Part shown: positions 13,922 to 58,900 of the stretch, piece by piece
Position numbering within the stretch: position 1 is the stretch's first letter
Layout: each line of letters opens with the position of its first letter
Source of the DNA: Paramoeba atlantica
Taxonomy: Eukaryota; Protista; Discosea
Direction of reading: 5' to 3'
DNA length: 64,000 nucleotides
Assembly: GCA_977017575.1 (NCBI GenBank)
Contig: CDRNVI010000007.1
Location: forward strand, 186,001 to 250,000
Position numbers and translations under genes: made by a program
Notes under the pieces: generated by a model
The model's database searches: none
What the model was told of the DNA's origin: nothing
What the model saw: only the letters and a program-made list of their open reading frames with translations

Positions 13922-15462
13922 TCAACGGGAAAGACTTAGCGAAATTTGGGAGATCCAGAAGGAACACGTTCGGGGTACTACTCCCCGAGAGGGATGACTT
14001 TTTTCAGTCAATTTGTACGAGTGCTTCACCATACGCGTTTTTTTTGCAGAATGCAACCCAAAATGAGCTGCATTTTCAGAGGAAAGAGGTCGGTGCTTAA
14101 ATCGGGCGTGTACGCGATTCGATCGTGTGAGGAAATCCTTAGTGGGATTTATTTCATGTGCAATTTCATAGGCCGCCACCGCCATAGAGGCCCCCAAGAG
14201 TTCTGCGTTTTTGACGGCGATTTCCGGGGTGTCTACTATGGGATATAAACCCTGTTCCGGGTTATTGTGCCCCCCCTGCACAATAACTGGCTCTAGGCAT
14301 AATAACTGGCTCTAGGCACAATAACTAAATATTGGAAAACCAAAAAAAGGGTTAAAAAAAAATTGGCGCCGCTTCGCGGCGCCTTTTTTATGGACAAGCA
14401 CGTTCATGTGCAGAATAAGTTCTATTTAAGGGATGCGTTGTTGAACAAACTACGTTATTTTCGAGAAAATGGGAATAAAAAACAACCAAAAAATTACGGC
14501 ACCGACTGGCGGCGCCATATTTTGGAGTGGGGGGCACAATAATAGTGGTTGTTTCCACTTATTGTGCCCCCCCTGCACAATAAGTAGCTCTAGGCACAAT
14601 AACCCGGAACAGGGTTTAGTAGTCTTCGGCATGTATCGTATACCTTATTTTCGACGGCTTTCCATTGGTCGTCGTTAAGCTTTAGACACATTTTCCCTCC
14701 TGCTATGGATTTGTGTTGTTCAAGCAGACGAAGGCGTTGGTTTTCGTTTGTTTCATCCCACGATGGAACTCGATCTTCCACAGTGTGCGAAACAGGGGGG
14801 AGAGGAGAAGATCGGACGAGGGGTTCATTGCACCTGAGCGGTCCATATATTTTGCAACAGTTATGCAGACAGCACAACTTGGCGGAGCATCGGTGACGGC
14901 ATGGTTCTACTCGTGCGGTGTTCAGTGAGTGAAGTGTTGCATTTCTAGGAGTTGCGCCAGAGGGTGGCACATAACTAGCGCTATCTTTGTTGTCACCATT
15001 CGTCGCACCCACAATTGGCGCAGTACGTTGGCCCCCGTTTGTTGGCCCGTTTTCGCTAGCACTACTGGCAGGAATACGGTAAAAAATTATGACATTGCTC
15101 ACGGCCCAGCCAGCCAAATTGGCAGCCTTTCGTAGAAAGTCACTGTCGTTGTCGTTGAGGTTTGGTGTTGTGGAATTCTTGTTGGTGTCGGTCCCATTTA
15201 TTTCGGTTCCCTCGGAAGATGGGGCCGCTGGGATTGTACCAGGTAGGGGTTGTGTTGACGGCCTCGGACCGCGTCCTAGAGTTGTGTAGACACTCTCCAG
15301 TGATATTATGTTACATGGTTCGGTTTGTGGGTTTTCGTTTGTAGAAGTCGCGGAGACTGGAATGTCCACATGCGAAGATTGAATACCTCTTTTACAACAG
15401 AGGTGTCCGCACGTACTTTTGCTCTTGCACGAGTGACGGCATGGATGCAAGACGTTATTCAC
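13922..15462 (-). pseudogene. 5' fragment of an RLE-retrotransposon ORF (relative of the 43286-47416 element), split by a MITE
   Basis: Two PCxHxC...CxHxCCK zinc-finger motifs. GGKMCLKLNDDQWKAVENKVYDTCRRLL|YPIVDTPEIAVKNAELLGASMAVAAYEIAHEINPTKDF aligns with GGRVMASLSHEQWQRAIKKSFERCEKYLKPAATPTEALRHADLLTACIAVSAYEIAREADPTKGF. Confidence 0.85.
14248..14616. mobile_element. 369-bp MITE, 24-bp TIRs (AACCCTGTTCCGGGTTATTGTGCC), TA TSD
   Basis: Perfect TIRs. Removing the element and one TA restores the host frame (RRLL-YPIVD). It has internal 20-bp tandem repeats and a GGCGCCGCTTCGCGGCGCC hairpin. Confidence 0.9.
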
Positions 15463-16240
15463 CCCATGATAAGTTTACAAGGTGCGCAAAGTCTATTTAC
15501 TGAGATCTGCAAAGAATTAGACCACAAGAATTAGCTCAAACGGACTTAACCTACTGATTTTAGAGGGGTGCCTTATCGTGTCGAGGGATTTATAAGTCAC
15601 ATCATACTACGGCAGATGTAGTAATGTTCAATTCAAATGTAGTAATTTACTACACCAATTACTCATGTAGTAAATTACTACAAATTGAATCCAGAGTGTG
15701 AAAGGACCTCGGATTCGGAACGATTGGGTCGAAAAACGGTGGCACACCAAATATGTCCAAAATCGGAGAAAATACAAGATCTGTAGGGGGGTACATGTCG
15801 TTGCCCACCACTGTAGACTATGTCTTTAGTAGTAGTAAGTAACCGTAAGTACCTTGTCACACAAATGATCAAGTTTGTGTGAAGGAATCATGACCCCCTT
15901 ACGACTTGTCGAAACATGTCACAATTGGTTGTCAAATTTGATATGCGGTGTCATGTACTAGTTGTATACTAGTTGTAACTTTACGCAGCAAAATCAGTTT
16001 GACGTGCAATGTTGATATCATAAGAACTCACACAAGGGCTAGCTCACAGTTGGGCCTTGCTCCCAAACGGGGGCTAAGCTCACAGTTGGGTTTAGCCTCC
16101 AGACACGTAAATTAGGCGTCGTAGGATAGAAAATAACACGCGTACTCATATAGAGACCTGAATGTTTTTGGACGAAATTTTTTGGGGGGTGGAATGTTTT
16201 TCGATTTTTGTCGTCTTTTTTCGAAAAAGCACCTCTAAAC

Positions 16241-31915: not shown

Positions 31916-32893
31916 ATGGTTACTCTTCTAAGGCGCATGCATAGCTTTGGAAATCACGACCTGTTCTCGTTGTTTCGAAGAAGGCTTTCTACAGAATCAA
32001 AAAGCCTTATTCGAGAACTGCGCCACCTTACAAGTGCTTCACTAAATGATGTCATGAAAAGCGTTCAGACTTGCGGAATCGATAAGGACGAATGCATTAA
32101 TTGGTTGATCAAGAACGGAGGGGCTTCTGTTCGATCGCGTAGAACCGATTGCAAGTCACGGCATGGATTATTACTTTGTGGATCTCTTCCCAAATATGGT
32201 TGGATGATGGAAATAAACTTTGAAACTGACTTTGCCGCACGAAGTTCCCTTTTTCAATCTGCACTGCAGAACGTGACAGAGTATTTGTCATCGCACGAGT
32301 GGAAATTTGACCAACAAGATATTTCACAAGAGGGTATAATCACTGATTTAAATACTTACCTTGCAAAGTATCATAAATTTCTTGGTCCCCATTTTGAACA
32401 TCTAAGCACGCGCCTCAAGGAACGAGTCATCATGTCTCATTTTCAAATCCTTCACGAAGGATTACCCGTAATTTCTGTAACGGGGGGATACGCGCATCTA
32501 CCAGAAAATGTTGTCTTCAACAAGAAATACTCCCATGTAGCTGAGGTAGGAAAGCACACGGCAGTAGGTTTTTATGTACACAGCTTGAATGGATTTCTTC
32601 CCTCAGGTATGGGACATATGGCTTCTGTTGTACTTTTGCGGGGAAATGACACAAATTGTGAAAAATTTAACGAAAGTGCACGTTATATTGCGCAACACCG
32701 TGTTGCGACGATCGGCATGTATGGAGCTGACATGAAAGATCCTGAAAGCAACAACGATCAGGCTGCCAATATCGCACTGTGCAATCAAAAGTATATGGGA
32801 GCCGATAATATGGTTCAAGATTGGCTTAATGACAGGCATCCAGCGGGTGTCACAATACATACAAGTGTGCTCCGTGCTTTGGCTAGTAAGTGA
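31916..32893 (+). CDS. TSFM: Mitochondrial elongation factor Ts
   Basis: Targeting-peptide-like N-terminus, LIRELRHLTSASLNDV...INWL (EF-Ts N-domain) and EINFETDFAAR (E.N.ETDFVA motif). Confidence 0.85.
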   Translation: MVTLLRRMHSFGNHDLFSLFRRRLSTESKSLIRELRHLTSASLNDVMKSVQTCGIDKDECINWLIKNGGASVRSRRTDCKSRHGLLLCGSLPKYGWMMEINFETDFAARSSLFQSALQNVTEYLSSHEWKFDQQDISQEGIITDLNTYLAKYHKFLGPHFEHLSTRLKERVIMSHFQILHEGLPVISVTGGYAHLPENVVFNKKYSHVAEVGKHTAVGFYVHSLNGFLPSGMGHMASVVLLRGNDTNCEKFNESARYIAQHRVATIGMYGADMKDPESNNDQAANIALCNQKYMGADNMVQDWLNDRHPAGVTIHTSVLRALASK

Positions 32894-33825
32894 AAAATTT
32901 TGTCCACCATACATCTTGCGAACGTGTTTCATGCGGGTACTTGGTACATTACTTAGTATACAGGGGTATACTTAGGGTATTGTACCCTAAGGTATGTACT
33001 AAGGGTGTTAGGGATTTGCACCCTAAGTACCCTTAGGGTGTATACTTAGAGGGGTAACTCTGGGTGGGAGCGCCTGGAAGCGCCAAGGACCTTTGTCTTA
33101 ATATTTCTTTTCTTTTTCTTAATCTTTTTTGCTTCAGTTAGAGGATGTGGTAATCATGTTGTTGGAAAAATTTAACCTACAAGACTTTATCATGGTTTCG
33201 AGTGCATAAAATATTTTAGAATGTACCAGGGCGGTCATCCCCAGGTGTGGCGACCCCCCATTTTTTGATTTTTGTTTTCAATTTTGTACCAACGGAGCCG
33301 TTTTTTATCTTTTTTACACATGGCAGGCTAACTATGGAGTGTTCATTGTCACTGGTGAGCCTGCCCACACATCGCTCTTCTTTCTCAGAGGGTTGAAACT
33401 GGGTGGGAGCGCCTGGGAGCGTACCTCGTCCTTTGAGTTGAGAGTAGCCCGTACCCAGGAGGTCCACAAAAGTATGTTCGAACGTCCACCCACCAAGGGA
33501 AATACCCTTGGTACCGACCAAAGAGAATACCCCACTTCATTAATTTTAACAATTATAATAAATATTTATATTTATATAAATTTGATTTTTTGTTATAATT
33601 TATATTTATAGAAATTAATGGAGGGGGGAGTAACTCTATGATGAAAAATTCTTATCTGTCAATCCATTGATCAAATCTTATGATATCAACATTGCACGTC
33701 AAACTGATTTTGCCGCGTAAAGTTACAACTAGTATTATTATAGCCAAGAAGTGAATAAAATCTTGTATATAAACTCTTGTGTAAAAACATTTGTTGCAAT
33801 ATCTCCTAATAAGGTTTTGATATCA

Positions 33826-34494
33826 ATGATTAACGCTGTTTCGTTATTCGGTGCGCTACGTGCATCGGACGTACAATCTTCAGGCAATGCCCGTGCAGCT
33901 AAAATAAGCTCCGTTTCCGTACCACAGGAATACGATTTGATAAGACTGATTCAAAATGTGCAGAACAGACATCCTAGCTGGGATACCAACACGCCTGCCG
34001 GTGCGTGGGCTGGAGTTGTATGTGACGAAAGAAATCAAGCTACACATATTACTTGGTCGAATTACAAATTAAGTTCGTTAGTTTGGAAATATTTGCCTTC
34101 AAATTTACTTACTCTTCACGTACTGAGTTCTGAGCTTTGTGGGGAACTTCCCTTTGTGTTGTTTCCTCCGAGTTTAGAGGTGATTAATCTGTATAACAAT
34201 AAATTAACCGGTAATCTTGACCTGCTCCGGCTGCCGCCGTTACTGGAGAACTTGGATGTGGAAAAGAATATGTTTTTCGGGGTCGTCGATTTCTCATCAC
34301 TTCCGTCAACTTTGGCTGACGTAAGGCTGTCTCGGAACAGTGAACTCAAAGGTGTGTTCGATGTGGCACTGCACAGTCCGAATTTGACCTATGACTTTCG
34401 GCAAACGAACATTACGGTCTCGAACGGATGTCTATTTCGAGAATGTTCCGACGACGACAATGATCCGGTTTTCGACTTTGCGGTTTTCGATTGA
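33826..34494 (+). CDS. Leucine-rich repeat protein with plant-type LRR N-cap
   Basis: WAGVVCDE...ITW cap followed by LPx.L..L.L..N.L.G.LDL repeats. Confidence 0.85.
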   Translation: MINAVSLFGALRASDVQSSGNARAAKISSVSVPQEYDLIRLIQNVQNRHPSWDTNTPAGAWAGVVCDERNQATHITWSNYKLSSLVWKYLPSNLLTLHVLSSELCGELPFVLFPPSLEVINLYNNKLTGNLDLLRLPPLLENLDVEKNMFFGVVDFSSLPSTLADVRLSRNSELKGVFDVALHSPNLTYDFRQTNITVSNGCLFRECSDDDNDPVFDFAVFD

Positions 34495-36357
34495 TATACT
34501 GAGTATTGCGGTACACGGTCTATCAATGTATTGTATCACCATACAAGAGGTAACGCGCAGGTGATAGGGGCAATTTTAGAACTGGTGGCCTAGAAGGTGA
34601 GACAATCTGCGCCTGGAGATGTAAAGAAATTTGCTTTATTTGACTCTTTTACTTTATTCGCTCGTTTTTCTAATAGTTTTAGAAGTTCAAATAAGTTTTA
34701 GAAGTTCAAATAAGTTTTAGAAAAATTATTCGCTTGTTTTCAAAAAGATATTTAAAGAAAATACAGTATTTTCAAAATACGAATTGTGGGTTAAACTGAA
34801 CCAATATGCGCAATTTTGCAAATTTTCAAAAAAAAATCCTTTTTTTCTCGTATTTTAATCTTTTTTCAACTTGTACATGCTTACTTCTTACAAATGAACG
34901 CATGCACGGCATTGCTTCAAATTTACTAAAACTTGAAACAATGCATCACCCCCGTTACACTTTAAACTTCCGGTGCATACCTCTGCTTATGCTTGTATTC
35001 GGTACCCTTCTTTTCCAGCTTCCTACCTGTCCCGCTTCAGACGCTTTTTGGCCATAGAGTTAGCGCACTCCATAGTGCTCGTGTACACACCTTCAGTTGT
35101 AATCCACTATCTTTCGTGGCGAACACTTTCGCGTAGAGATAAATCGTGACGGGTGTCAGATAGAATTTTTATGCGACTTCCTGAAGCAAGATTCTCGATG
35201 TTTGGAGAAGAGGATTCTGGAACGTTCTATTCGGAACAGAGTCCATATAGATAATTTGCGGTTCTTCTATTCTCTCGATGGTTCTTGTTACAAATCACTT
35301 TCTGCGCCACTGGAGAGTGCTTTCGCATCCTTTTAAGACATTGATTCTCACTCCTGGAGAACTTTTTTCTAATGATACTTCTTGAACGACACGAGAATCT
35401 TAACGCATCCAGTGCGCGCCATTAAAAGGTGAGAAGGTTGATAAAGAAGTATAAACGAATTCAAAAAACACACCGTTTATATAAAATTAATGTACAAAAA
35501 CAAAATTCATCATAAAAAAGGGGCGGAAAAATGTTCAAGTAAACTTTTTTCTACCAGAAATGAGAAAAGTGCGAATATTGGTTCAGTTTCACCGAATTGT
35601 GTCTACACATCATTTTTGGTACGAGACATGAAACAATCTCGGATCCGAAGAACTCAGCACTCCCAAGAACTCCACTCGGATCCGAAGAACTCCCAAAATG
35701 TTTGCGAACCTCGTGCTCCAACCGACCCACCAAGTTCTCCCGATACAAATCGCTGCAAACGTGGCGGTGCTCCCATTCGCGAGGCTTAAGCAAATGTTCT
35801 TGTGGTAAATCATAGGCACTCGGATCGTAGCCTCCGGCGCCGCGGTACGCATTTCCAGTTTCATGGCTTCTGTAGTTTGAGTCGCGATTCGTTCGATGAT
35901 ACTCTCTAGGGAGGTTAATCTTGCCTCACTCGTTCCAGGTGCTCTTCCATCTTTCGCATGACTCTATTGTTTTCCACGAGTTGCAGGGCGAAGGCGACAA
36001 GAGGGGCCTGACCGTCGGACATTCGATGTACGATTTTTGTTGTTAGTTTCCAGGAAACGTAATCTCTCAAATGTATACATATTTACAAAGAAAGCCCAAG
36101 AGAAATACATGATTTTTATGCTATAAAAAATCTTCTGCTGAAAATTTCTTTTTTAAGTAGAACCTAGTTTTAGAAAAGCTTGTTCGTTTGTTTTCAAAAA
36201 AATGTTTGAAGAAAATACGAATTGTGTCTACACATCATTTTTGGTACAATTGAGGTTTTACGAGCCATGAAACAATCTTTCATCGTCAAATCCCATCAAG
36301 GGATAAGACGGATATTCCGGACAAATACCCTCTAGAAGCGGGTCCGTAACCGACCGC

Positions 36358-39300
36358 ATGGAAAATCCAAATCCGCAGCTCGCGTCCCACGATCACAATG
36401 AGCGCATAGAGAGTACCTCCACTTCCTCCTCCATCCTCTCCGCGCGAAGTTTTGACCCCACCCCAGGGGGTCCCCTCTCCGGGGAACCCTACGCCATCTC
36501 CCTCTCCAGCACCCTACGCGTCTCCTACGCCAAAACCGTCCAAAAGGAGCTACGCATCCTCTCCTTCACCACCACCGCGAACCAAGCCTGTGGTTTCTGT
36601 TCCAACCTGATCCACACCGCGCGGTACGGACTGAACCCACTCCGTCTCGACTTCCTCCTGTGGAAGAACCTCTACGAGCAGTTCCACCGGCTCACCAACG
36701 TGTACTTTCTGTTCATTGCGGTGCTGCAGCTGATTCCGCATCTCAGCCCAACGGGGCGGTTCACGACGCTGGTCCCTCTAACCTGTGTGCTTGCGTTGAC
36801 GCTGGCCAAGGACAGTTACGAGGACTGGCAACGGCGGGTACGGGACCGGGAGTTGAACCACCGCCCGGCCACGGTATTTCGCGACGCCCAGTGGCGCCAT
36901 GTGCGGTGGCAGGATGTGCAGGTCGGGGATGTGGTCAAATGCGTCCCGGGGAGGGCCTTCCCGGTGGATATGGTGGTGCTGTGGAGCAGTAACCCCCATG
37001 GGGTGTGTTACATGGAGACCGCGAGCCTGGATGGGGAGAGTTCGTTAAAGGTACGTAGCGCGCCATCGGGGGTTCGTGAGGTTTTTGATCCTCTAGGTGT
37101 TCATACGTTTCAAGGTACACTGGTGTGTGAGCCCCCGAATGAGAGAATTTTTCATTTCGAGGGAACGCTTTTCCATAGCAGCGCGAACAGTGAGGTGCTG
37201 GAGACTCCTCTTGGGGATGAAAATTTTGTTCCCAGAGGAGCTGCCCTGCGAAATACGCGTGAAGCTTATGGGGTGGCTGTGTATACGGGTTCCGATACAA
37301 AGCTGATGCGCAATACCAAAAAGAAGAGGCATAAAGTATCTACTTTGGAGAAAAAGGCCAATTACCAAGTTCGATTTATGCTCCTCCTGGTGTGCCTTCT
37401 GAGTGTTGTGTGTACTGTGTGCTCGTTTATTGCGGAAGCAAGCGGTACTACACCCTGGTACTTGGAAGAGGTAACAAATAGTAGCTTATTGGGGCACGCA
37501 TTCGCGTCGTTCTTTAGTTTCATCATTCTTTTTAACACTCTGATCCCAATTTCCCTTTACGTATCGTTGGAAGTGGTGAAGATTCTACAGGCCAAACGCA
37601 TACAAAATGACCCCGAGCTTTATGACGCCGATCAAAATATACCCACCGTTGTGCAAACATGTTCGCTGAATGAAGAATTGGGCCAAGTATCGCAGATTTT
37701 CACCGACAAAACTGGCACTCTGACGCGAAATCGGATGGAGTTCATTAAATTCGCCTACCTGGCCAGCGTTGGTGGAGAAACGGAAGTTATTATCAGGCCT
37801 CTTCCTAAAGATGGGCAATCTTTGGTGTCCACGAAAGATGGTCCTGCGGAATCTTGTTCTAACGTTGATCATCCGCAACTACCCACTCTGCAACCTGACT
37901 TGTGGGTGGGTTCCATAAGAAATTGTACTCCGTTTCTTATCTGTGCGTCATTGTGCCACACAGTCCTCGCCGAAGTTGATCCTAAATCAGGAAGTTCTGT
38001 GTACAGTGCATCTTCACCTGATGAAGAATGTCTTGTTCATGGTCTCACTGCATGTGGAATAAAGCTTCTGTGGAGAACAGAAAATAGAATGGTGATTTTT
38101 TCTGGCAAACAAGAACAACAGTGGGAAATACTTCACGTTTTAGAATTTACCTCGGAACGGAAACGTATGAGTATTATACTTCGAGGCAAGGACCAAAGGA
38201 TCTTTCTTTTTTGTAAGGGGGCAGATGATGTGATATTGTCTAGAGTTACATCTCCGCCTTCGGTAATTGAAAAACTACAAAAAACAATTTGTCACTTTTC
38301 GGAAGAGGGATTGCGAACGCTGGTTTTCGCTTTTCGGGTACTAGACCATAAACAGTACCAAAATTGGAGTTTGCGCTACCATTCTGCTTGTGCGTCTCTG
38401 CAAAATCGGAAAAAAATGGTAGAAAAGCTAACCGATGAGATGGAATGTTCTATGTCTCTCCTAGGGGCTAGTGCACTAGAAGACGAATTACAACAATCTG
38501 TTCCTGAAACAATCCAACTCTTGAAACGAGCGGGAATCGAATTTTGGATGCTCACGGGAGATAAACGAGAGACCGCGGTGAGTATTGCGCACTCATGCGG
38601 CCTTCTCAATTCGAATATGCAGCTTCTTGAAATAAAGAGCGTGCGACCTCGATGTGTCATAGAAAGCACCATAAATTCACATATTGCGCATATTATGAAG
38701 GAAAATAATGCCTGTGGGTTATTGCTGGAAGGCTCTGCATTGGAATGTCTTTTAAAAAAGGATATCAAATATCATTATCGAGCCTCCCTACTATACGAGT
38801 TATGCACTCTCTGCAGGTCAATTGTGTGCTATCGCATCTCACCGCTTCAAAAAGCACAAGTTGTGGATCTTGCTAAGTCCTACAGCAACAATATTACGTT
38901 ATCCATAGGTGACGGAGGAAACGATGTCAGTATGATTCGAACGGCGCATGTGGGAGTGGGCATATGCGGTCATGAGGGACTACAAGCCGCTCGGTCAGCG
39001 GACTACAGTGTGGCCCAATTTCGATTTCTTTCAAGGCTACTACTGGTTCACGGACATTGGAACTATCGCCGCATTAGCAAATTGGTGCTATACAGCTTCT
39101 ATAAAAACATTGTGCTCCAATTTGCCCAATTTTTGTATTGCTTCAGTAATGCTTTTACGGGTCAAAGTTTGTATGAGCCATGGGCTCTTGCACTTTACAA
39201 CGTTGCGTTCGCTGCTTTTCCGATTATGGTTTTGGGTATATTTGATGAGAACTGCACCGATCGTGTGCTTTTGCAAGAGGTGGAGAGGTACTACCCACGT

Positions 39301-39897
39301 GGACCTCAAAATAAATATTTCAACCCAAGGATATTTTGGTCATACACGCTAAATGGGATTTACCACTGCTTGTTTTTGCACTTTCTTGTTCATTACTCGG
39401 CGTTTGGCACTATTTCCGCCCCCGACGGAAGAATCCTATCTTTACATGCGTGTGGTTTCATTGCGTACTCGTGTTCTGTTTTTCTTATTACTGCAAAAGT
39501 GGCGTTAGAGACACGAAATTTTGGGTTACCGAGCCTTTTTGCTGTTTTTGGCAGTCTTGCTGCATGGTATATTTTTTGGTTTCTCTACGGCAGCGCCTTG
39601 GGTGCATTTTCGAGCCCACGAGTTCAAGCGGTGGGTTTTGATGCTTACTACATTCCGCACAATACTCTCTCATTTCCCTTGCCTTGGCTACTTACTTTAC
39701 TCATAGTCACGGTGGTGCCTATGCGAGACATTTTGTGGAAGTGTCGATCTCGTTCATTTGCTTCTACTGTCGGCCTAGGCATCGGGAAATTCTTCGAAAA
39801 AACTTGGACAATTTGTATTCGGACGCTGAAACGTACCTGTAAGCCCTTCTATTGGTCGACTAAAGAGCCTATATTTCGCCTAGACGTCAGGGGCTAA
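36358..39897 (+). CDS. P4-type ATPase (phospholipid flippase)
   Basis: DKTGTLT phosphorylation site, LDGES, PISLYVS, WMLTGDKRETA and IGDGGNDVSMI motifs, with multiple TM helices. Confidence 0.97.
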   Translation: MENPNPQLASHDHNERIESTSTSSSILSARSFDPTPGGPLSGEPYAISLSSTLRVSYAKTVQKELRILSFTTTANQACGFCSNLIHTARYGLNPLRLDFLLWKNLYEQFHRLTNVYFLFIAVLQLIPHLSPTGRFTTLVPLTCVLALTLAKDSYEDWQRRVRDRELNHRPATVFRDAQWRHVRWQDVQVGDVVKCVPGRAFPVDMVVLWSSNPHGVCYMETASLDGESSLKVRSAPSGVREVFDPLGVHTFQGTLVCEPPNERIFHFEGTLFHSSANSEVLETPLGDENFVPRGAALRNTREAYGVAVYTGSDTKLMRNTKKKRHKVSTLEKKANYQVRFMLLLVCLLSVVCTVCSFIAEASGTTPWYLEEVTNSSLLGHAFASFFSFIILFNTLIPISLYVSLEVVKILQAKRIQNDPELYDADQNIPTVVQTCSLNEELGQVSQIFTDKTGTLTRNRMEFIKFAYLASVGGETEVIIRPLPKDGQSLVSTKDGPAESCSNVDHPQLPTLQPDLWVGSIRNCTPFLICASLCHTVLAEVDPKSGSSVYSASSPDEECLVHGLTACGIKLLWRTENRMVIFSGKQEQQWEILHVLEFTSERKRMSIILRGKDQRIFLFCKGADDVILSRVTSPPSVIEKLQKTICHFSEEGLRTLVFAFRVLDHKQYQNWSLRYHSACASLQNRKKMVEKLTDEMECSMSLLGASALEDELQQSVPETIQLLKRAGIEFWMLTGDKRETAVSIAHSCGLLNSNMQLLEIKSVRPRCVIESTINSHIAHIMKENNACGLLLEGSALECLLKKDIKYHYRASLLYELCTLCRSIVCYRISPLQKAQVVDLAKSYSNNITLSIGDGGNDVSMIRTAHVGVGICGHEGLQAARSADYSVAQFRFLSRLLLVHGHWNYRRISKLVLYSFYKNIVLQFAQFLYCFSNAFTGQSLYEPWALALYNVAFAAFPIMVLGIFDENCTDRVLLQEVERYYPRGPQNKYFNPRIFWSYTLNGIYHCLFLHFLVHYSAFGTISAPDGRILSLHACGFIAYSCSVFLITAKVALETRNFGLPSLFAVFGSLAAWYIFWFLYGSALGAFSSPRVQAVGFDAYYIPHNTLSFPLPWLLTLLIVTVVPMRDILWKCRSRSFASTVGLGIGKFFEKTWTICIRTLKRTCKPFYWSTKEPIFRLDVRG

Positions 39898-40899: not shown

Positions 40900-42553
40900 A
40901 AAACAATATGTATTTCGAGTAGTATGATCTTATTCATATAAAATTAATCTTTCGTTTCAGTCTTTGTACCCCATATAACACTTGCAATCGGGGTAAAAGG
41001 TTTCTGAATGTAAAAGAGTCCCTTTTGCGTGCAAATTTTTCATCATGAAACTTTATACAAAGCATGAAGATTCACAGAGCATGAAGCCAGCGGTATCATC
41101 TGCAATTTTCTTACATGTTAAATCCTTTTTCGTTTAATTTTTTTGTAATTAATTTCTTTAACTCTTTTAATTTAGCTAATGCATGTAATGCTTTGCATGC
41201 TGAATATGTTCACTTGAGGGGTATTGAAGCCTCGCGAAATTTCGCCCCACTTTCCTCACTCGGAATGTCGCACATGAGAATTCTTCCGTGAAAGACCTTG
41301 TGCACTCTGACGATTTTATCCAGAGGCTCTACTTCAGAAAAACCTTTACAAAAAGAGCGATCTGTTACCGTGCTGTCGCTGCCTGCACTGAATAATAATG
41401 TTGAAAATTCCCCATTTTATTGCCACTTAAATTGCTTCTGATCTACAGAAGTGTAGCTTGTAGCTGTTGCCTCGGCCGGAACCATCCCCCTTTGACATGT
41501 TTGCTCGATAATTTTGACTATTTATTAGTTTGGAAAAATAGCGCTTAAACGGGGGGGACAGTATATTAATATTCATTGTTCGACAGTGTCGACTATATAG
41601 TGCTGACGTCCTTTTCCTCCTCGAATATCAATCAATGCGTCACAGGAATTCGCTTCAATATCTGTCTTCTTGAGATTCACTGCTCCTCTTCTCATTGATT
41701 TCTATAAATGCCATTCCCGAACTTTTCAGAAAAAAAATATAGATTTTCGAAAAATTATGTTTTTGAAGAAAAAAACAGGAAAAACTACGATAGAGGGGAG
41801 AACACGGCAGAAAGATCTGACCCTCACCCCCGACAAGGACCTTGGATCTCACGTTCTGCGATAGCTTATCGCAGAAAATTAGCGTTTTTCCACCAGGGAG
41901 GATCACTAATCAGGACTTTTTGCCTAGCCATTCCCAGTAAAGTATTTCTATAAATAAATATAAATTTTCTTTTTTGTTATAAGCTATATTTATAGAAATT
42001 AATGAGAGGAGTAGTAGTTCGCTGTGATGCTGAAGTCCGAAATACGCAACGGCGAAGCCTTGACCATACGTGAGTTCGCCTTGGTCTTTACAGTAATTTA
42101 GTCATAGACCGCATTTTCGTGAGTGTGATCGAGCCTCGAGGTTTGGGCTGGAGACAGATATTTAGGACGCCTTTGAATCGTCTGCGGAAGCGCAAGGTCT
42201 GCGACCAAATTGATCTTCCCATTGCCGCCAAACTACAGCGGCATGGTAGGATTCCAAGTAGATCCTCGATAGAAGCGTGACAAGCTGAGATACAGCGCTA
42301 AGAGCGGCGTTGAGAAGGCATGCTATTGTAAACGAAATTTATAGAATATTCCTATTGATGGAAACAACATGTTTTACACCCTTTCGTCTAGTGTTACAAC
42401 TACGACCCGTGTGGGTCAAGAGAGTCCCGAGACTTCTGAATGTTTTTTGTTTATCATGCAGTATGACTGCACAGATTGTCACCTAAGAGAAATACACGTA
42501 GATCATGCATAAACCCCGCACAAAACGGGTTTCCCTTAAGCTTTTCATCATCG

Positions 42554-43276
42554 CTATATGCTGGCTTCCGTCCAGCTCGGGTTATCGCGGTTTTGAAAAA
42601 TCGCGAAACTTCCTCGTATTGCTCTTTTGACAAGCTTCTGTCGACATTGCGAGGCGGTGGCCTTGCTACCTCCGAAAAGTGAGTTGAGCGCTCGCGTAGA
42701 GGAGTTGAGCTTCCCTCTGGCCCCCACTTCGATGACAAGAAGAAAGGTTGCCGGGTTAGTCATTTTCCTTTCGAGAAACAGATTCCCGTACTTCCGCACT
42801 TTCCGCTCATGTGAGGATAAAAAGTTTTCCTCCCACGGAGAAGTGAGCTCAAGTATGAACTCAGTACCATTATGTAGCTTGATCCACCCATCAGGTCTAA
42901 GGGCCGTGTCCTGTTGACTTAGCCATGTTGGGGGGTTTCGGTAAAGAGAAAGATCAAAGTGGTACTGCGCTGTTTCTGGGGATGCTCTTACGGCATCTGC
43001 GATAGCGTGGAGTATAAGATCATGGCGGAACGTGTAGCGGCCCTGTTCAAGGGCCACCTTGCACCCTGTGAGGACATGTCGAACTGTCTGCACCTCCTCA
43101 TTGCAAATGGGACACTTTGTGTCCGTGTGCGTACTTAGACCCCAACGACGCAGTGCTGAACGAGTAGGTAGTGGTGTTTGGGCCAACACAGATGCAGTAA
43201 ACCGGGAGAGTGCCTCACTGTTGATGTTACATACCGCAGCAGCAAAGTCTTTCGCAAGTTCGTCCTCAGTGGCCAT
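42554..43276 (-). CDS. CCHC finger plus restriction-like endonuclease, in frame with the upstream RT ORF past a single TAG
   Basis: LPTRSALRRWG..CPIC..TVRHVLTGC..GRYTFRHD..RPDG..ELTSP..K.RKY..EVGARG. Confidence 0.9.
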   Translation of the reverse strand: MATEDELAKDFAAAVCNINSEALSRFTASVLAQTPLPTRSALRRWGLSTHTDTKCPICNEEVQTVRHVLTGCKVALEQGRYTFRHDLILHAIADAVRASPETAQYHFDLSLYRNPPTWLSQQDTALRPDGWIKLHNGTEFILELTSPWEENFLSSHERKVRKYGNLFLERKMTNPATFLLVIEVGARGKLNSSTRALNSLFGGSKATASQCRQKLVKRAIRGSFAIFQNRDNPSWTEASI

Positions 43277-43285
43277 ACGGAACCA

Positions 43286-46200
43286 CTATGCCGCTATGGG
43301 AGCCCGTCGTTGCACGGATTCGGAAAGGTGTCGCTCGTATTCACTCTCAATGAACCGCCGTGTCGCCACACGGTCTTCTCGTCGGTCGTACAGTTCAACT
43401 ACTGGTTGGACGTGTCCCGTTGAGCGCTTGTGCAGTTCCCTGCGGATGCGGTGTCTTAAAGCCTGTTGCACAGCCGGGTCACGAGATTTCTGCATTTGCT
43501 CGACCAGTGTACTCGTGCAGAGTATCCACAGCTTTGAGAAACTAGTTAAGGCCCACCACCGCTCAGAATAGAGAAGTTCGCTGGTTGCAGTTTTGGCCAT
43601 ATTCACCCATTTCCGAATGTGTGTAGTCGCAAGCTTTTGCAGCCGCAGGATGAAATTCAGTGTGATTCCCGGATTTACCGTCAGAACGTAGCGTAGACGG
43701 GAAATAATGACGTTATTGTAGACCCAGAGGCAGGCGGGCGTATCCATGGCACTTTCAGATACGTTGGTAAGCCAGTGGCGTAGTTGTGTACGGAGACTCT
43801 TGAACAACACTTTCCCTTGTTGGGCTCCAGGCGCTAGCGTCAGAAACTGGCTGCCTTTGTCCTGGCCCAGAAACTGGCTGCCTTTGTCGCAAACGTGGGG
43901 TATGCTTTCGCCGCCGGCACGGATGCGCGGTCTGTGGGTTTTGTATCCTCCATCCGCTACAGCCATATACTGAAGCCGACATTTCTGTACATTTAGCCGC
44001 ATGCCTAATCTGGCGAGCACCTTTACCAGGGCGTTAGTAACATGCTGCATTTCTTCGGGTGATTTGGTAATGACGGCAAGGTCGTCCGCAAACGCCTTAA
44101 GGAATGATTCTTGCCCGCCCCATGTGATGCCATATCCTGGAAAGCTGGATCGAAGGTACCTTAAAACTACCTCCATCGCAAGGTTGAATAGCACAGGAGA
44201 TAGGGTGTCGCCTTGAAGAACGCCTCGTTCAACGGGAATGTGGTTAGTCAACCCCTCAGCACACTTGACTCGGAGAGAAGCACTGGTATAGAGGGAGTGA
44301 ACATATTCGATGATAATCGGCGACACCTTTGCCCATTGTAATACTTGGAAGAGGATCGAGTGTGGAAGAGAACCAAAGGCGTTTTTCAGGTCGAATTGAC
44401 CCAAGCAGTATTGCCGTTTGTGCTGCCTCTGAAAATCCAGCAGTTCACAAAGCGCTTGCGTGTGTTCGATGGTTCCATTGACATTGGGGAGAAAGCCTTT
44501 TTGTATGGTCGTGTCGATGATCCCTGTGCTGACAGCGTGACTCAGAAGTTTGTGTCCTATGATTGAGTGGAGTAGCTTCCCCAGACAGCTGGTCAGGCTG
44601 ATAGGGCGCCAGTTCGACAGTTTATCCGTAGCCCCCCCTTTGTGGATGAGTCGAGTCACCGCTTGTTTCCAGTGGGTTGGACCTACGGAGTGTTTGAGTA
44701 GGTCGTTGAATACTTGGGCGATGAAGGGGTACAGCTCAGTGCAGCGTCGGAGGAAGGCGTTACTTATGGTGTCAGGACCTGGTGCAGCGGACGGTCGCTT
44801 GGAGGAGATAGCCGCGGCTATGGTTTGCACGTCAATATCTTCCCACTTCATTTCGCTTTCGTTTCCAGCGCCAAGAAGATCAGTGGGGGGTAGAGTGTGG
44901 GTTTCGTTGCCAATGCTTAGTGTGTCCTTGAAGAACGTTTCAATAACTGCCTGTGGACAATTCGGGAAAATCGTTGGCTGTTTTCGCATCTTCTCGTTAT
45001 TGTCGAGGCATTCCCCTCCTGCGGTCCAGGGGTTCCGTTGAAATCTGTCCGTCACCCATCTTTTCTCCCTTTCACGTCGCAGGAGATTTGCTTCTTCTGT
45101 GTAGAGGTTGCGGGCTTTCGTGGCTTCTTTTATGTTGCGTATCAGGCGATCTCTTTCCGAGCGGCCGTGTGTGTAAGAGAGGGTACGTTTTAATTGGCGG
45201 ATATGTCCAGAAAGTTCCTTTGCTGAGCGATCGTAGCTGAGAGGTCGTGAAGCACGTTTGGTGTGGCCAGTCGTCGAACGCAGCTTGAATCCTTTCGTTG
45301 GGTCAGCCTCCCGCGCGATTTCATAAGCCGAGACTGCTATGCAGGCAGTTAACAAATCGGCATGTCGCAGTGCTTCAGTTGGGGTTGCAGCTGGTTTAAG
45401 GTATTTCTCACATCGTTCGAACGACTTCTTGATTGCGCGTTGCCATTGCTCATGAGAAAGACTAGCCATTACTCGCCCTCCTTCAATCGTACGCAAGGTA
45501 CTCAGCAAGTCTTCCGCAGTTTCTGGGCTTCCTGAACGATCGTTGCACGTTCTCATCCGTTGTGATTGCAGAATCGTGCGTACATTCGGTATACTATTTG
45601 GTTGCGTGTCATGATGTGGTAAATCCTGCTGTGTTGTACCCTGCACCTGTGTCTCGGTTTCTTCAATCACATCTATTCGGGCCTGTGTGTGATGTGCGGT
45701 CGTTTCGGCTTGCTGTTGGTCCTGTGGCATGTTCCTGTGCGTCTCGGGGTAACGTTGCGCTGCGGATCCGGTTGCATGGCCATCCCTTGTGCGTGCAGGG
45801 GCTGTGTTTTCGTTGGTACGCGTGCTCCCTGTGGTGAAGCCCCATGAAAGAAGATTGCGCAGGCTCCAGCGACTCGAGCCCGATCGGGTATCTTTAACTG
45901 GGCTTTGGACACCTTCCTTACAACACTTGTGCTTACATTCTTCCTTGTTGTGGCACAGGTGTTTGTAGGGTTTGTGCGAGGATTTTTCCCCCTCCGGTAC
46001 CGTAGATGTGTCAGAAATTTTCCTTGCAGATGTTGGCTGTATGTGCTGCGCGTGCAGATCACGAGTGGAGGCAACATAGGTTTCATTATGTGGAATTCCA
46101 GGTCTACTGGGGTCGGTGGGTGTGGAACTATCGACCAGCACGCCAACTTTGCAACATCCATGTTTGCAATTCTGTTTGTCCCGACAGACATGCTTGCATG

Positions 46201-47416
46201 GCCGCCTTGTTGTGCTGTACATAGTCTGGTGTGGCTCATCTCGTAGTTGTGTCGAGTGGGTGTGGGGACTCTGAATCGTTCCCGTGGGTCGGTGCGTGCC
46301 TGCTTGAGAGGCCGGATCACATTCACCGCCTATTTTGCAACATGGGTGAAGGCATGTTAGTTTGTTTAGACAACGATACGCGCAGGGCTGTGAAAGCGTA
46401 TACCCAGGTCTGGAGGCTGTTTGCTGCACTGCTACTAGAGCAGTAGGAGCCGCTTCAACGAGCTGACGAGCATTCAGATCGGAGGCAGGGTCGGTAATAG
46501 GCTCGGGTTCAATGCCCACTTTACAGCACGGATGTAGACATGTTCGTTTGCTTAGGCATCGGTGTGCGCACGGCTGCGAACGCGTGGACTCAGGTCGTCT
46601 GCACGCTGTTGAATGTGGCGAAGCGTCAACCATGGAACCTGCTTCACCGAGCTGGCGCGCGTTCGGATCGGAGGCAGGGTCGGGAATGGGTTCGGATTCA
46701 ATGCCCACTTTACAGCATGGATGGAGACATGTTAGTTTGTTTAGGCATCGGTGCGCGCACGGCTGCGTACGTAACGACCGTGTTCCTCGAGAATCATTCG
46801 GTTGCCTCGGCGCGCGAATTGCGAGTGGCTCATCATACGAGATCTTGGGATTTTCCCAAGGGATTTCGTCGGACGTCTGTTCCCTCTGCGATACGTGGGT
46901 TATGTCGAAGGATGCCAATCCTGGGATATCGTGACCAGCCAGTTTCTTCTTAATCGCCCTACCGAGTGTGCCAGGGCAAGAGTATTGTTGGCTGAGATTC
47001 AGGACTTCGTCTGCGTGCGCCGCGGTCCAGCTGGCGTGTCGAAAAATGCGGTGGGGCGGCGCAATTTCTTTGAACACAAAGTGTTCACAAGCTTCTTCGT
47101 CCATCACTTCTTGTAAGGTACATTTCTCGATTAGATTACCATCGGTTCTCTTCGCTCCAGTATCCAAAGTGCGTGCCAAGGAAAGCTCCGCTGTGATTTC
47201 TGTATTAAAGTGTTTCTTTTCAGTAAGGAAGGAGGCCGCCGCGTGAATATCGGAGAAGTATATCCAAAGCGAGGAAGTCGAGTGTCTGATTTTAATCGGT
47301 ATTGCGCGCTGCTGAGTGAAGTGGAAGCTGTGCTTACGCGATGATTTTGCGCCAGCAGATCCTCGAGGGAGGTCGCCTTGCGCTTGGGGGGCAGAGGTGG
47401 AGGGGGGAAGTGCCAT
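43286..47416 (-). CDS. Retrotransposon ORF: five Mer3/HFM1-like zinc-finger repeats plus reverse transcriptase
   Basis: PCAHRCLNKLTCLHPCCKVG-type repeats; APGPD, NWRPISL, QKGF, DLKNAFGS, GVLQGDTLSP and AFADD motifs. Confidence 0.92.
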   Translation of the reverse strand: MALPPSTSAPQAQGDLPRGSAGAKSSRKHSFHFTQQRAIPIKIRHSTSSLWIYFSDIHAAASFLTEKKHFNTEITAELSLARTLDTGAKRTDGNLIEKCTLQEVMDEEACEHFVFKEIAPPHRIFRHASWTAAHADEVLNLSQQYSCPGTLGRAIKKKLAGHDIPGLASFDITHVSQREQTSDEIPWENPKISYDEPLAIRAPRQPNDSRGTRSLRTQPCAHRCLNKLTCLHPCCKVGIESEPIPDPASDPNARQLGEAGSMVDASPHSTACRRPESTRSQPCAHRCLSKRTCLHPCCKVGIEPEPITDPASDLNARQLVEAAPTALVAVQQTASRPGYTLSQPCAYRCLNKLTCLHPCCKIGGECDPASQAGTHRPTGTIQSPHTHSTQLRDEPHQTMYSTTRRPCKHVCRDKQNCKHGCCKVGVLVDSSTPTDPSRPGIPHNETYVASTRDLHAQHIQPTSARKISDTSTVPEGEKSSHKPYKHLCHNKEECKHKCCKEGVQSPVKDTRSGSSRWSLRNLLSWGFTTGSTRTNENTAPARTRDGHATGSAAQRYPETHRNMPQDQQQAETTAHHTQARIDVIEETETQVQGTTQQDLPHHDTQPNSIPNVRTILQSQRMRTCNDRSGSPETAEDLLSTLRTIEGGRVMASLSHEQWQRAIKKSFERCEKYLKPAATPTEALRHADLLTACIAVSAYEIAREADPTKGFKLRSTTGHTKRASRPLSYDRSAKELSGHIRQLKRTLSYTHGRSERDRLIRNIKEATKARNLYTEEANLLRREREKRWVTDRFQRNPWTAGGECLDNNEKMRKQPTIFPNCPQAVIETFFKDTLSIGNETHTLPPTDLLGAGNESEMKWEDIDVQTIAAAISSKRPSAAPGPDTISNAFLRRCTELYPFIAQVFNDLLKHSVGPTHWKQAVTRLIHKGGATDKLSNWRPISLTSCLGKLLHSIIGHKLLSHAVSTGIIDTTIQKGFLPNVNGTIEHTQALCELLDFQRQHKRQYCLGQFDLKNAFGSLPHSILFQVLQWAKVSPIIIEYVHSLYTSASLRVKCAEGLTNHIPVERGVLQGDTLSPVLFNLAMEVVLRYLRSSFPGYGITWGGQESFLKAFADDLAVITKSPEEMQHVTNALVKVLARLGMRLNVQKCRLQYMAVADGGYKTHRPRIRAGGESIPHVCDKGSQFLGQDKGSQFLTLAPGAQQGKVLFKSLRTQLRHWLTNVSESAMDTPACLWVYNNVIISRLRYVLTVNPGITLNFILRLQKLATTHIRKWVNMAKTATSELLYSERWWALTSFSKLWILCTSTLVEQMQKSRDPAVQQALRHRIRRELHKRSTGHVQPVVELYDRREDRVATRRFIESEYERHLSESVQRRAPIAA

Positions 47417-47952
47417 GCCCCAGTAGGGGAGGATAACAGTTAGTACAAATGATGAAATAATTCAACAAGGTACAGAAACTTTAGTCCACTAGGATAAAGT
47501 ACCAATGTAATATTCTCATAACTTTCTACAGTTATTATGAGTTGTTGAAGTAAAGCATAAAGAAGAATAGCATAACTTTTGCTTTGTAAATGCAAAAGTA
47601 GCCGTATCATTCCACCCCGTTAAAAGGAAGCATATATAAAAAGGAAGCATTCAGTCAGAATAGCTCAGTCCCTGTGAGCAGTATACTACTCTACATGTGT
47701 ATTTCCATACGTTTTTGAAAACGTTAAGCAGTTCGATCATTTTGAAGAATAAGCAATGCAGCAAATTTGTAGTAAAAATCTGCGCACATACATGTATTAA
47801 TATGTAACAGCATTTCAGAAGTAAAGCACATTGAGTATTTTCTCCGCTAAGCACAAGTTTCTTTCTCTATGCGTAAAAAGAAATGTTAAGCAAATATCCA
47901 TTTCGAAAGCACATTCGAGCCTCTAAAGCTACTATTTCAAAAAGTGGGAAGT

Positions 47953-49077
47953 CTATTCACGACCGCGCTGGTACCCCGGCTTTTTACTAGGGGTTTTCAT
48001 TTTGAGACGAACCTGTTCGTCGATCAATCGACCATTCTTCAGCTCATGACCGCGTATCCCGCGATGCTTGCATGAACCACGTGGTGCATTGGGATACAGC
48101 GGCTGTATACAGCCACGTTTTCCAGTTACGCCCCCGTATGGCAGGCGAACGGGGCTTATGTCCCGAACCTGACGTACTTTTACGAGGACCAATCAACTTC
48201 TTACACAACAATATTCTTATTTCCGCGATCCTTGGAGTCGTCGAGCATAAGCTGCTCGAGAGTTTCCGTGTCCACCTGCGCCGCGTCGTGCGTGAGGCGA
48301 TGGGAGAGGAGTTCGGCCTCTACCTTGCACAGTATGGTCCATAAGGAGATGCGGACCGCCTCGTTTTTAACGCCAGGTATCGGCGTCCCCGCTGCGAGCT
48401 CGGTTAGCACCCGGGCGCAGTTGACCGTCTCAGGCCAAGGCTGTCACGGACCTTCTTGGTCGCTGCTGTCAGCCACGGTTCGGAGCTAAAACCCGACTGC
48501 GTCAAGCAGTCAAGAAGCGGGTCATCGCGCGTACCGATGATGTCACGGAACGCCCCACGCACATCCTTGTGGTTCTTTTCTTCAGTTGGTACATCTTCAG
48601 TACGTGACGTAGCTTCAGTACCGACAAGACTGCGCTTCACCACCGACAAGAAGGCTTCACGCAACTCCTTTGCATTGTGTTCCCCGCGATTAGCAGTCTT
48701 TCGGTCTTGATGCTCTTGGTCTGTTCTCCCGCGGTCAAGCTTCCTTCCAGTAAACTGTGTTCGTCTCGCAGAGCGACTAATACAGAGTTCGGTATATCTG
48801 GCGAGAAAAAAGCACCGCGGATCAGCGCACTCAACGCTTTGCGAATAGCAAGGATACCACGCGCTGTAGCTCCAGACGCGGCACTTGCAGCCGCGATTTC
48901 CAAGAGCGGTTCGGTCGTTATTTTTGTTCTTATGAACTCCGTGGCTTGCGGGAGTAGCTGGAGAAGGTCCTCCCGAACAGTCACTCCCAAGCGCTTTAGG
49001 GAACATACTCCGCGAAAGGCAGACTCAAGAGATGCAGCTGTGTTGTCTGGTTTAAGTTCGGGAAGAGCTTCGCCCAT
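47953..49077 (-). pseudogene. Frameshifted gag-like ORF with a decayed CCHC zinc knuckle
   Basis: Overlapping ORF pieces end in CKH[R]GIRGHELKN[G], which fits CX2CX4HX4C with two single-base Cys losses (CGC, GGT). Confidence 0.45.
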
Positions 49078-55940: not shown

Positions 55941-58900
55941 ATAGGGTGACCCGGAGTTTATAGGCGAAGTAACTCGGTCATGTCGCGGAGTAGATTACAA
56001 AGCAAAACAGCGCCCCTTGTTGGTTATTGGAGATTTTAATGCACCTCTAACTTTAGTTACGAACAAGGTTATGGACCCTGCGGCCATATCTCAACTAAAA
56101 GGATTAATGTGTTCCATTGGATGTAAATCTGCGCACTCACTCTGTCCGAGTCGGCGAAAATGGACATGCGAGCTACCATGTCGAGAAAAATCAAGCCAAA
56201 AGAACGGCACATCTGTGGAAGGAAAAAATTTATACAAGAAAGTGAATGAAAATGCACAACAAAAGAAGACAGAAAATGAAGATAAAACCTCAACTAGTAG
56301 CACTACGCTTCAACAAATGCGAATGAAGAACAAAGGAAACCGAATCAAGAGGCAGCTCGATCATATTTTAGTTAGCGATCGGTTTTCTTCAAGCGTTTGT
56401 GCTCATAAAGTTCTTAAAGCACCCATTCCTACAACGCATTGCCTTGTCGTGGCAAATGTTCATATCAAGTGGCGCTCTGGAGGACGAAAAGGGCCAGAAA
56501 GGGTTCCTTGGGCCCAATTGAGGGATGAGAAACGGAGGCTGATGTTTAAACAAAAGGTTTGGGAGACTACTGAAAAGGAATCATCTATAACGTGGGATAA
56601 CTTATCCGATGCGATGATAAGCACATGCAAATCAATTTCACGAATGAGAACGGAAGACGCAAAAGAGGCGGACACAGTGCAGAGCCACGAAAACAAACCA
56701 GACGACGAACAAGCTCTGCCTAGGAGTGTACGAGATCTTTTTCTACAAAGTCGTAAACCACAACATTTCGAGAAAATGATTCAGACTCATAGGCACGAAA
56801 TAGAGGACGAAATATCACGGGAATGTAATGAAATTGAGTCTGGACTTCGTAGTAACAGATCCAATCCATGGCGTACACTACGACGAATTTGTGGATTATA
56901 CAGGAAAGCGTTCAGTATCGACACTTCCTCGACACGAGAAACGTTAAAAATTGTACGAGACTTTTTCGCCAGAATGGGTGACGGCGATCGCGGAAATTCG
57001 ACAATCAAATTCGATGATGCTCCTCATTCACCGATTGAAGTAAATGACTCACCGTTCAGTGAAGAAGAGCTTACATCTTGTGTACAGAGACTGGCCCGCA
57101 ACAAAGCCCCGGGAATGGATCAAATACCAGCGGAAGTGCTCATAATCATGGTTGAGCACGATGAGCTTAGAAGAACCCTTCTCAATATTATCAACAGCGT
57201 ACATGAAACGGGTGTTTCACCTGATTGCTGGAAATTTATCCTACAGGTACCTATACCAAAGAAGGGTGATTTATCACAAATCGCGAACTGGCGCCCTATC
57301 TGCCTAGCCAATAGTATTGTAAAGCTCATGAACTGCATGATACTGCAGCGGATTCGCCCCTCGATTGAACCGATACTCCGTGATAGCCAATTTGGGTTTC
57401 GCCCTGAACGCTCCACTGCAGGGGCGCAGATTTTCCTTAACGAGACGAAGGTTAGGGCGTGCAGGGATAAGTCTGGAGTTGCAGTCGCGTTCCTTGACTT
57501 TGCGAAGGCGTTTCCATCTGTTTCTTTCAATGCTTTACATGCTGCGCTGGTAGCTTTTCGCGTAGGGAAAAACTTAATTCGCATGATAATGTCGCTCTAC
57601 AGTGGGCTGCGAGGGATCGTTCGAACACCTTTTGGAGACACGGCATCATTTTCAATCCATACGGGTATTCTTCAAGGAGATGTTTTAGCCCCGTATCTAT
57701 TCGTTCTCGTGGTGGATCGTATTTTTCATCGCGCTCTGGATAATAAACCTTTCGGTGTTCTTCTGAAGAGCAAGGGAACTAAAAGCAGGGGTCTTCAGGA
57801 GACTCGGCTCACGGACATTAATTATGCAGATGACATTGCTCTTCTCGCCACGACGAAGGGGGATCTATCCCGGATGATAGAAGCAACATCGGATGAGTCT
57901 AAGCAGGCTAATCTTAGAATCGCCGTAGGGCCTACCAAAACTGCCTGGATGGCCTTCGGTAAGGTTCCAGGGGGGACTCGTGATCTTCGGGCGGGCCAAA
58001 TGGGAAAAATTCCTCTTGTTGACTCTTACCGCTATCTGGGAAACATTCAGGATTCAGGCGTTTCTTCGCCAGTAAAAGACCGCTTAAGGCTCACCTGGGC
58101 CGCATTTCGGAAGCTCAAGGGCATTTGGGACTCGCCACTGAGTGCATCAACAAAACTGCGTTTGTTTGATTGCCTCGTTTATCCAATCATGACCTTTGGT
58201 GCCGCTTCGCTTTCCATATCCAACAAAATGCTTCGGCAAACAGAAGTTGAGCTCAATATGATGCGAAGATTTTGCTGTAATTGTGCTAAATTGGACGAGT
58301 TTGGACACTGCTACCCTATCGAGTCACTTTATTGCGGCACTCCTCGTTTCTCCACCGTACATCGCGTTAGTCGGGCTAAAATTGTTGGTCACATTCTAAG
58401 GCACTCATTCATGTTTCGAGATCTTATCCAGTGGAAATGCAGCGATAGGAAACGAAATCTCTCACCAAGCGAAGCTTGCTTTCACGATCTGGACATTACC
58501 GAAGAACAAGCCCTCGTATACGCTCAGGATCGAGATCACTGGAAAAAGTTATGTGAAGATTTAAAGGTAGCACTCGAACCGCTTCCGGATTACGAAAGAC
58601 TCTCTTCTCCTAGATGGAAAAGTAAACATGCCCACGCCTTGAAGCAAGATACGCCTTACGATTTGCAATTTGTCGAAGAAAGTTCTGATCCTTTTCCATT
58701 AAAAGATGATGAGGTTCACTTCTATATTGATGGTTCAGTCCGTGCCTTGCGGGTGACAAACGAGATCAGAGCAGGTGCTGGAATTGTTGTGCTTCAACGA
58801 TGGACAACCGATAAATGTTTTTCCTTAACACTAGATGTTGATAGTGCCGAGCAAGCTGAGGCTGAATCTTTTCGAGAGGCGCTTAAAAGAATACCGGACG

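Follow-up and report, generated by a model that had tools for sequence, protein, structure and literature searches.

An R2-like retrotransposon of a spliced-leader protist with an N-terminal array of predicted zinc fingers related to the finger of Mer3/HFM1 helicases

Long interspersed nuclear elements (LINEs) with a restriction-like endonuclease (RLE) are being developed for gene insertion, and where they land is decided by the DNA-binding modules at their N-terminus. In R2-type elements, it is this N-terminal position that binds the target DNA. R2 (R2Bm; PDB 8gh6, 8ibw, and 9dou) has a single open reading frame (ORF) comprising an N-terminal nucleic-acid-binding region with C2H2 and Myb domains, a reverse transcriptase (RT), a CCHC knuckle, and an RLE of the PD-(D/E)xK type. 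It inserts site-specifically into 28S rDNA with little or no target duplication. Elements of the CRE clade (SLACS, CZAR, CRE1/2) are also of the RLE type, have kinetoplastid hosts, a poly(A) tail, and N-terminal zinc-finger-like motifs (PMC12278014), and reside at one fixed position of the genes for spliced-leader (SL) RNA. Here, we analyze a stretch of 64,000 nucleotides from the Paramoeba atlantica assembly GCA_977017575.1 (contig CDRNVI010000007.1, positions 186,001 to 250,000), called the window below, to which coordinates refer unless a contig is named. Positions 42444-47478 of the window appear to hold a nearly intact single-ORF non-long-terminal-repeat (non-LTR) retrotransposon of RLE (R2-like) architecture (Table 1). 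Its N-terminal part contains an array of Cys/His modules, probably homologs of the zinc finger located behind Sec63 in the Mer3/HFM1 helicases that animals and fungi have. The clade of this element is known so far only from this spliced-leader (kinetoplastid-like) protist.

The chassis, that of an RLE LINE, is already known; what distinguishes this element is an N-terminal module that links it to a meiotic helicase, together with integration at no specific site. Residues 925-1150 of the 1376-aa main ORF match RVT_1 (Pfam, E 5e-31), and among PDB sequences the RT retrieved L1 ORF2p and R2 proteins (E 1e-27 to 1e-25), the alignments to R2 (E about 1e-25) reaching into the thumb. The C-terminal piece of 240 aa contains a zf-RVT match (Pfam), did not significantly match any PDB sequence, and reads C-x2-C-x8-H-x4-C-x11-RHD ... 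RPD-x13-E ... K. This order of CCHC, RHD, RPD, E, and K agrees with the published REL consensus, C..C..H..C..RHD/N..E..R/KPD..D/E (Yang et al.), in the form in which PMC12857005 quotes it. An earlier note on this DNA, made from the sequence alone, had described the RT and RLE motifs as looking intact; FADD, RHD, RPD, E, and K are indeed all present, but an in-frame TAG splits the frame in the window copy. Compared with R2, the differences concern the N-terminus, the 5' end, and the insertion site. A Pfam scan of the N-terminal 900 aa gave no match at E ≤ 1, and thus neither the C2H2 nor the Myb domain of RLE elements. Unlike R2, the element lies outside 28S rDNA and is not site-specific, and its 5' end seems to stem from trans-splicing, with no ribozyme or other RNA family detected by Rfam in window 42000-48000. 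The window element is also set apart from R2DM-named sequences on the RT tree.

Behind a conserved N-terminal domain and ahead of the RT, five units of the pattern P-C-x-H-x-C-x2-K-x2-C-x-H-x-C-C-K-x-G are found at aa 220, 283, 345, 407, and 484. The units are of Cys5-His2 type (C-x-H-x-C-x5-C-x-H-x-CC), and the P, [N/D]K, and K-x-G-[V/I] that flank the ligands are conserved as well. A six-frame motif scan of the window returned only these five units and two further ones at 14854-15441, and the same scan on 50 shuffles had zero matches. This bears out the five units counted in the earlier note, two of which it had called degenerate; in the window copy these are fingers 3 and 5. The two-copy relative that it had placed near 13922-15462 was also recovered, as an internal fragment (13979-15474) of another family (67-90% amino acid identity), which has no RT. 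The DNA of units 1 and 2 agrees at 89% over 131 nt, and that of unit 3 shows 71-78% identity with either of them; unit 3 is missing from the two nearest families and is specific to the family of the window element. The proposed growth of the array by tandem duplication is thus borne out and is specific to this family, but it is recent only in part, since it predates the divergence of the present copies.

The module is strongly conserved where ligands are expected. Alignment of 43 distinct units, drawn from 12 families, showed all five Cys and the second His to be invariant, and the first His and two Lys to be conserved in at least 90%. Comparison of the window family with its two nearest families gave identities of 67-90% and 57-67% for the finger cores (one finger lacking a clean counterpart in the alignment with the second-nearest family) and of 79% and 62% for the RT, whereas the long, disordered linkers between the fingers were only 11-41% identical. 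These values suggest purifying selection on the finger cores but not on the linkers.

The link to Mer3/HFM1 comes from a profile (A1) built from ten units of the element family only. Searched against 1.84 billion representative proteins, it retrieved 86 proteins at E ≤ 1e-3, a subset of which was Pfam-scanned or named. All six matches of at least 1000 aa from other organisms combine DEAD, Helicase_C, SNRNP200_wHTH, and one Sec63 domain, with one or two copies of the motif 40-180 residues after Sec63. One of them is named 'ATP-dependent DNA helicase MER3' (Mactra antiquata); the other five, from Strigamia, Spizellomyces, Quaeritorhiza, Pichia, and one unnamed source, are listed as DNA 3'-5' helicase or 'Sec63'. 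Three shorter matches are Sec63-plus-finger fragments. The consensus of 11 helicase fingers (A4), P-C-x-H-x-C-x-D-K-x2-C-x-H-x-C-C-K-x-G-V, and that of the 43 element fingers (A2), P-C-K-H-x-C-x-N-K-x2-C-x-H-x-C-C-K, agree in spacing and in the flanking P, [N/D]K, and K-x-G-[V/I/L], and hhalign aligned the two profiles with 98.9% probability (E 1.9e-17). Retrieval was one-way, from element fingers to helicases. Published work also places a Zn finger in this part of Mer3/HFM1 (PMC13003030, PMC8383409). As judged from these profiles, the identity suggested in the earlier note holds, and the element module is most simply regarded as a homolog of the helicase finger. The setting differs: Mer3/HFM1 helicases have one copy (two in some yeasts) after Sec63, whereas the elements have two to six before the RT.

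Other routes to the finger were less informative. It has no Pfam model, PDB searches with the array sequence and with the finger profile returned nothing, and nothing usable came from a feature search with the array in the ESM Atlas. A word-indexed protein search of the array region found one protein only, from the same organism, at an E limit of 0.01 that is too strict for single-finger helicases. The organism's own Mer3 homolog (1516 aa, L008) has no finger. The motif was present in none of the 120 Sec63 helicases retrieved with it, which include kinetoplastid Mer3 and many ASCC3 proteins, and the Mer3 homologs retrieved from prokinetoplastids, Trypanosoma, and Leishmania all lack the finger. 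Recent capture of the module from the organism's own Mer3 was rejected because this protein has no such finger.

Finger-bearing elements are abundant in this genome. The finger profile marked at least 150 places, with open frames of up to about 1850 aa, and there are at least 88 RT-bearing copies. At least 12 extracted families have two to six fingers N-terminal to RT and RLE, and the 12 families form one clade on the RT tree (SH-aLRT 98), within which RT identity falls to about 40%. This clade adjoins unnamed environmental RLE elements without fingers. Among the matches listed, the nearest RT-RLE relatives outside the genome are such environmental elements (P0126-P0140), which are 30-33% identical over 89-98% of the RT-RLE region and form the neighboring group on the tree, but have neither these fingers nor a C2H2 pattern. 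No C2H2 pattern was seen in the finger-clade proteins P0001 and P0122-P0125 either. Of the 120 closest RT-RLE matches listed, the majority of them unnamed, none bears the name CRE, SLACS, or CZAR; in the scanned or named subset of the 86 finger-profile matches, no element of trypanosomatids was recognized. Every database protein combining N-terminal fingers with an RT traced back to this same organism, and no paper describing the pairing was found in the literature searched, Repbase and Dfam being outside the scope. To this extent, the earlier statement that no described non-LTR clade has this module stands.

Table 1. Features of the retrotransposon copy and of the related fragment in the window
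Feature	Position	Strand	Basis or remark
Whole non-LTR retrotransposon copy, about 5035 bp	about 42444-47478	minus	Bounded by at least six near-identical copies (98-99%) and by empty-site paralogs on contigs C84 and C12
5' remnant of the spliced leader, TTTCTGTACCTTGTTG	47463..47478	minus	Other copies extend the remnant to ATAAAGATACAGTTTCTGTACCTTGTTG
Main ORF, 1376 aa: N-terminal domain, finger array, RT	43289..47416	minus	
N-terminal alpha/beta domain, about 190 aa	46784..47374	minus	Alignment of 11 families, AlphaFold2 (AF2) model
Finger 1 core, CAHRCLNKLTCLHPCC	46712..46759	minus	
Finger 2 core, CAHRCLSKRTCLHPCC	46523..46570	minus	Unit DNA 89% identical to unit 1
Finger 3 core, CAYRCLNKLTCLHPCC	46337..46384	minus	Tyr for first His in all family copies; family-specific extra unit
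Finger 4 core, CKHVCRDKQNCKHGCC	46151..46198	minus	
Finger 5 core, YKHLCHNKEECKHKCC	45920..45967	minus	Tyr for first Cys, in the window copy and its allele only
RT domain, Pfam RVT_1, FADD	43967..44644	minus	
In-frame TAG splitting the polyprotein of the window copy	43286..43288	minus	
C-terminal 240-aa piece, RLE	42554..43276	minus	Same frame as main ORF
CCHC knuckle	43061-43114	minus	In the C-terminal piece
RHD	43019-43027	minus	In the C-terminal piece
RPD	42890-42898	minus	In the C-terminal piece
E residue of the RLE	42848-42850	minus	13 residues after RPD
K-rich KVRKY	42788-42802	minus	In the C-terminal piece
3' untranslated region, ends GATAAAC(A)n	42444..42553	minus	
Internal fragment of related family: two fingers, no RT	13979..15474	minus	

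The ends of the copies are informative about the RNA from which they were made. Their 5' ends bear 16-28 nt of ...ATAAAGATACAGTTTCTGTACCTTGTTG, which corresponds to the 3' portion of this cell's spliced leader; in the genome, the same leader 19-mer with GT directly behind it was counted 459 times, among them in a tandem array resembling SL genes. The leader remnant thus indicates that the copies were made from trans-spliced RNA. At the other end, the copies terminate in GATAAAC(A)n with an A-run of 4 to about 25, and the element RNA appears to be both trans-spliced and polyadenylated. Poly(A) tails of varying length and 5'-truncated copies were found, as expected for target-primed reverse transcription. 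The leader joins AATTATTTCATC-ATTTG in the window copy and in the copy on C45, but ATTTG directly in those on C2, C52, and C46 (window 47437-47478; L010-L012), a difference explained by a 12-nt indel or by two acceptor sites for trans-splicing.

Unlike CRE elements, the window element is found at unrelated sites. The flanks of at least seven independent insertions of its family are unrelated and share no motif at either junction, so the element is not site-specific, and the target preference for which the earlier note wanted the flanks checked was not seen. It follows that a targeting role of the fingers can only be inferred, and that the new targeting mechanism proposed in that note is speculation. 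Insertion into SL genes was rejected, since the leader piece belongs to the element RNA and not to the target, and the flanks are not SL genes. For the window copy, the empty site is represented by uninterrupted paralogs (C84:57486-58542 and C12:43009-44058), and comparison with it showed that insertion replaced 2 bp without target duplication (one empty site available). The element is nested in another dispersed repeat (window 47479-48400 and 41800-42443), copies of which, 81-87% identical, lie on C84, C12, C30, and C56.

Taken together, we consider it probable that this locus is a nearly intact RLE element whose Mer3/HFM1-homologous array serves as a multivalent nucleic-acid-binding module. 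The array would replace the C2H2 and Myb domains of R2 and might hold the RT-endonuclease on DNA, or on the element's own RNA, during target-primed reverse transcription, reading no specific sequence. Several observations weigh against this interpretation. The AF2 model of one finger, metal-free, was of moderate confidence (predicted local distance difference test [pLDDT] score of 77), and Foldseek found no structural match for it; that the fingers bind zinc is a supposition based on their ligand pattern. The literature describes no function of the finger, which recent Mer3 papers barely mention. No labelled CRE, NeSL, R4, or HERO references by which to name the RT clade occurred among its matches. 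In the RLE, two spacings fall slightly outside the ranges quoted for the REL consensus, with 11 rather than 9-10 residues before RHD. Finally, the N-terminal domain, not the fingers, may be the actual DNA binder. This conserved domain of about 190 aa precedes the fingers in 7 of the 11 aligned families, including that of the window element. Its AF2 model (pLDDT 74) retrieved nothing below E 0.4 in Foldseek, the top four VIA-align matches include the DNA-binding domains of I-HmuI (Z 6.1) and I-TevI (Z 5.1) and a DNA-binding protein of Paulinella (Z 5.5), all in the score range of chance matches, and an ESM Atlas search pointed weakly to NUMOD1, NUMOD4, and I-HmuI-NUMOD homing-endonuclease clusters. 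We regard this homing-endonuclease likeness as a lead and not as a finding.

What the array would bind can also be read differently. The fingers could be an RNA-binding or chaperone module that grips the element's own transcript and not the DNA target, as a substitute for the missing ORF1/Gag. The single-ORF organization without a Gag-like ORF1, the joining of the finger to three CCHC Gag-type knuckles in an outside protein, and the lack of sequence-specific insertion all speak for this possibility, which is nevertheless doubtful given that the equivalent position in R2-type elements binds target DNA and that Mer3, a DNA helicase, acts on DNA. It is tempting to speculate that the Mer3/HFM1 finger is an autonomous module reading DNA structure, such as single-strand/double-strand junctions, D-loops, or nicked DNA, and that arrays of it load the RT-endonuclease on replication or recombination intermediates. 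This is unlikely in our estimation; if true, it would constitute a structure-directed integration mode not described for LINEs and would also reveal the role of the finger in the meiotic helicase. Somewhat more unlikely still is a protein tether, in which the fingers bind a host factor (e.g., RPA or recombination proteins) at replication or recombination intermediates, with DNA structure or chromatin state guiding integration. The long disordered linkers would suit multivalent tethering, and the Mer3/HFM1 zinc finger adjoins an RPA-binding helix (PMC13003030), but the absence of the finger from the organism's own Mer3 and from all euglenozoan Mer3 homologs seen implies no conserved host partner.

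Two further explanations are poorly supported. Resemblance to Mer3/HFM1 by convergence of a short Cys/His pattern would fit a motif of only about 22 residues and the modest matches of single-copy helicases (E 1e-5 to 8e-4). Agreement extends, however, to non-ligand positions (the P preceding the first Cys, the central [N/D]K, and the K-x-G-[V/I/L] behind CC), and both the profile-profile score and the single helicase architecture shared by the six long matches make convergence highly improbable. Tandem duplication of the unit DNA could alternatively mark the array as a recently captured host exon without function in the element. This is scarcely credible for an array that occurs in 12 families of one diverse RT clade, keeps its ligands invariant while its linkers decay, and has no counterpart exon in the host Mer3.

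These elements are of interest beyond their host. Landing sites of RLE-type LINEs are decided by N-terminal DNA-binding modules; the module of this clade is a different, little-studied one, and the elements integrate at no fixed site. Mer3/HFM1, a helicase needed for meiotic crossovers, has this module too; the human infertility variants C1157Y and Q1164X are reported to lie inside the HFM1 finger (PMC8383409). The conserved multi-copy arrays of an abundant element would be an easily expressed source for finger-binding tests, and the 43-unit alignment defines the invariant residues of the finger.

Outside this organism, the finger was also found on an RNase_T-type exonuclease, a Gag-like protein with three CCHC knuckles, and coiled-coil proteins, and it is thus a rare, mobile module, mostly on nucleic-acid-handling proteins. 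The metagenomic protein P0262 combines two fingers of the form E-C-K-H-x-C...CCKRHL with an RNase_T (DEDD) exonuclease domain, and P0250, P0264, and P0266-P0268 have the same finger variant. Positions 954-3524 (plus strand) of a metagenomic contig (L043; JGI 3300045502) encode an unrelated LINE-like RT with YADD, 29% identical to the window RT, which ends in two fingers. These are C-terminal and of the CCKRHL variant, no RLE is visible, and the protein seems to be a second case, of independent origin, of this finger joined to a retroelement.

The window copy itself is damaged. Searching the 45.7-Mb assembly of the organism itself at the DNA level identified an allelic copy on C65, near-identical copies (98-99%) on C2, C52, C46, and C45, a 5'-truncated 2.2-kb copy on C20, and 333-bp 3' fragments on C44 and C59. 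In sister copies, a single frame of 1624-1632 aa is open throughout. The contigs of other copies read G at 43288, giving CAG where the window copy has TAG, and C at 45966, giving Cys where the first ligand of finger 5 is Tyr. The window copy has thus been damaged twice; the Cys-to-Tyr change is shared with its allele only. On C44, the 333-bp 3' fragment recurs every 5370 bp over positions 23229-39672, which looks like one insertion multiplied inside a 5.37-kb tandem repeat. Many loci of the assembly occur as near-identical pairs on different contigs (C7/C65, C2/C52, C15/C53, and C3/C30), as expected of a haplotype-resolved or duplicated assembly, and copy counts should therefore be halved.

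Elsewhere in the window, two RT-like stretches on the plus strand (22755-23338 and 57031-58020) are 25-27% identical to the window RT and probably belong to other retroelement classes. The 22-24 kb bin is the most GC-rich of the window (0.58). Just upstream of the finger-bearing fragment, an intronless ORF of 1051 aa (9419-12574, plus strand) with XPG_N and XPG_I domains is predicted to be an XPG/Rad2-family nuclease gene.

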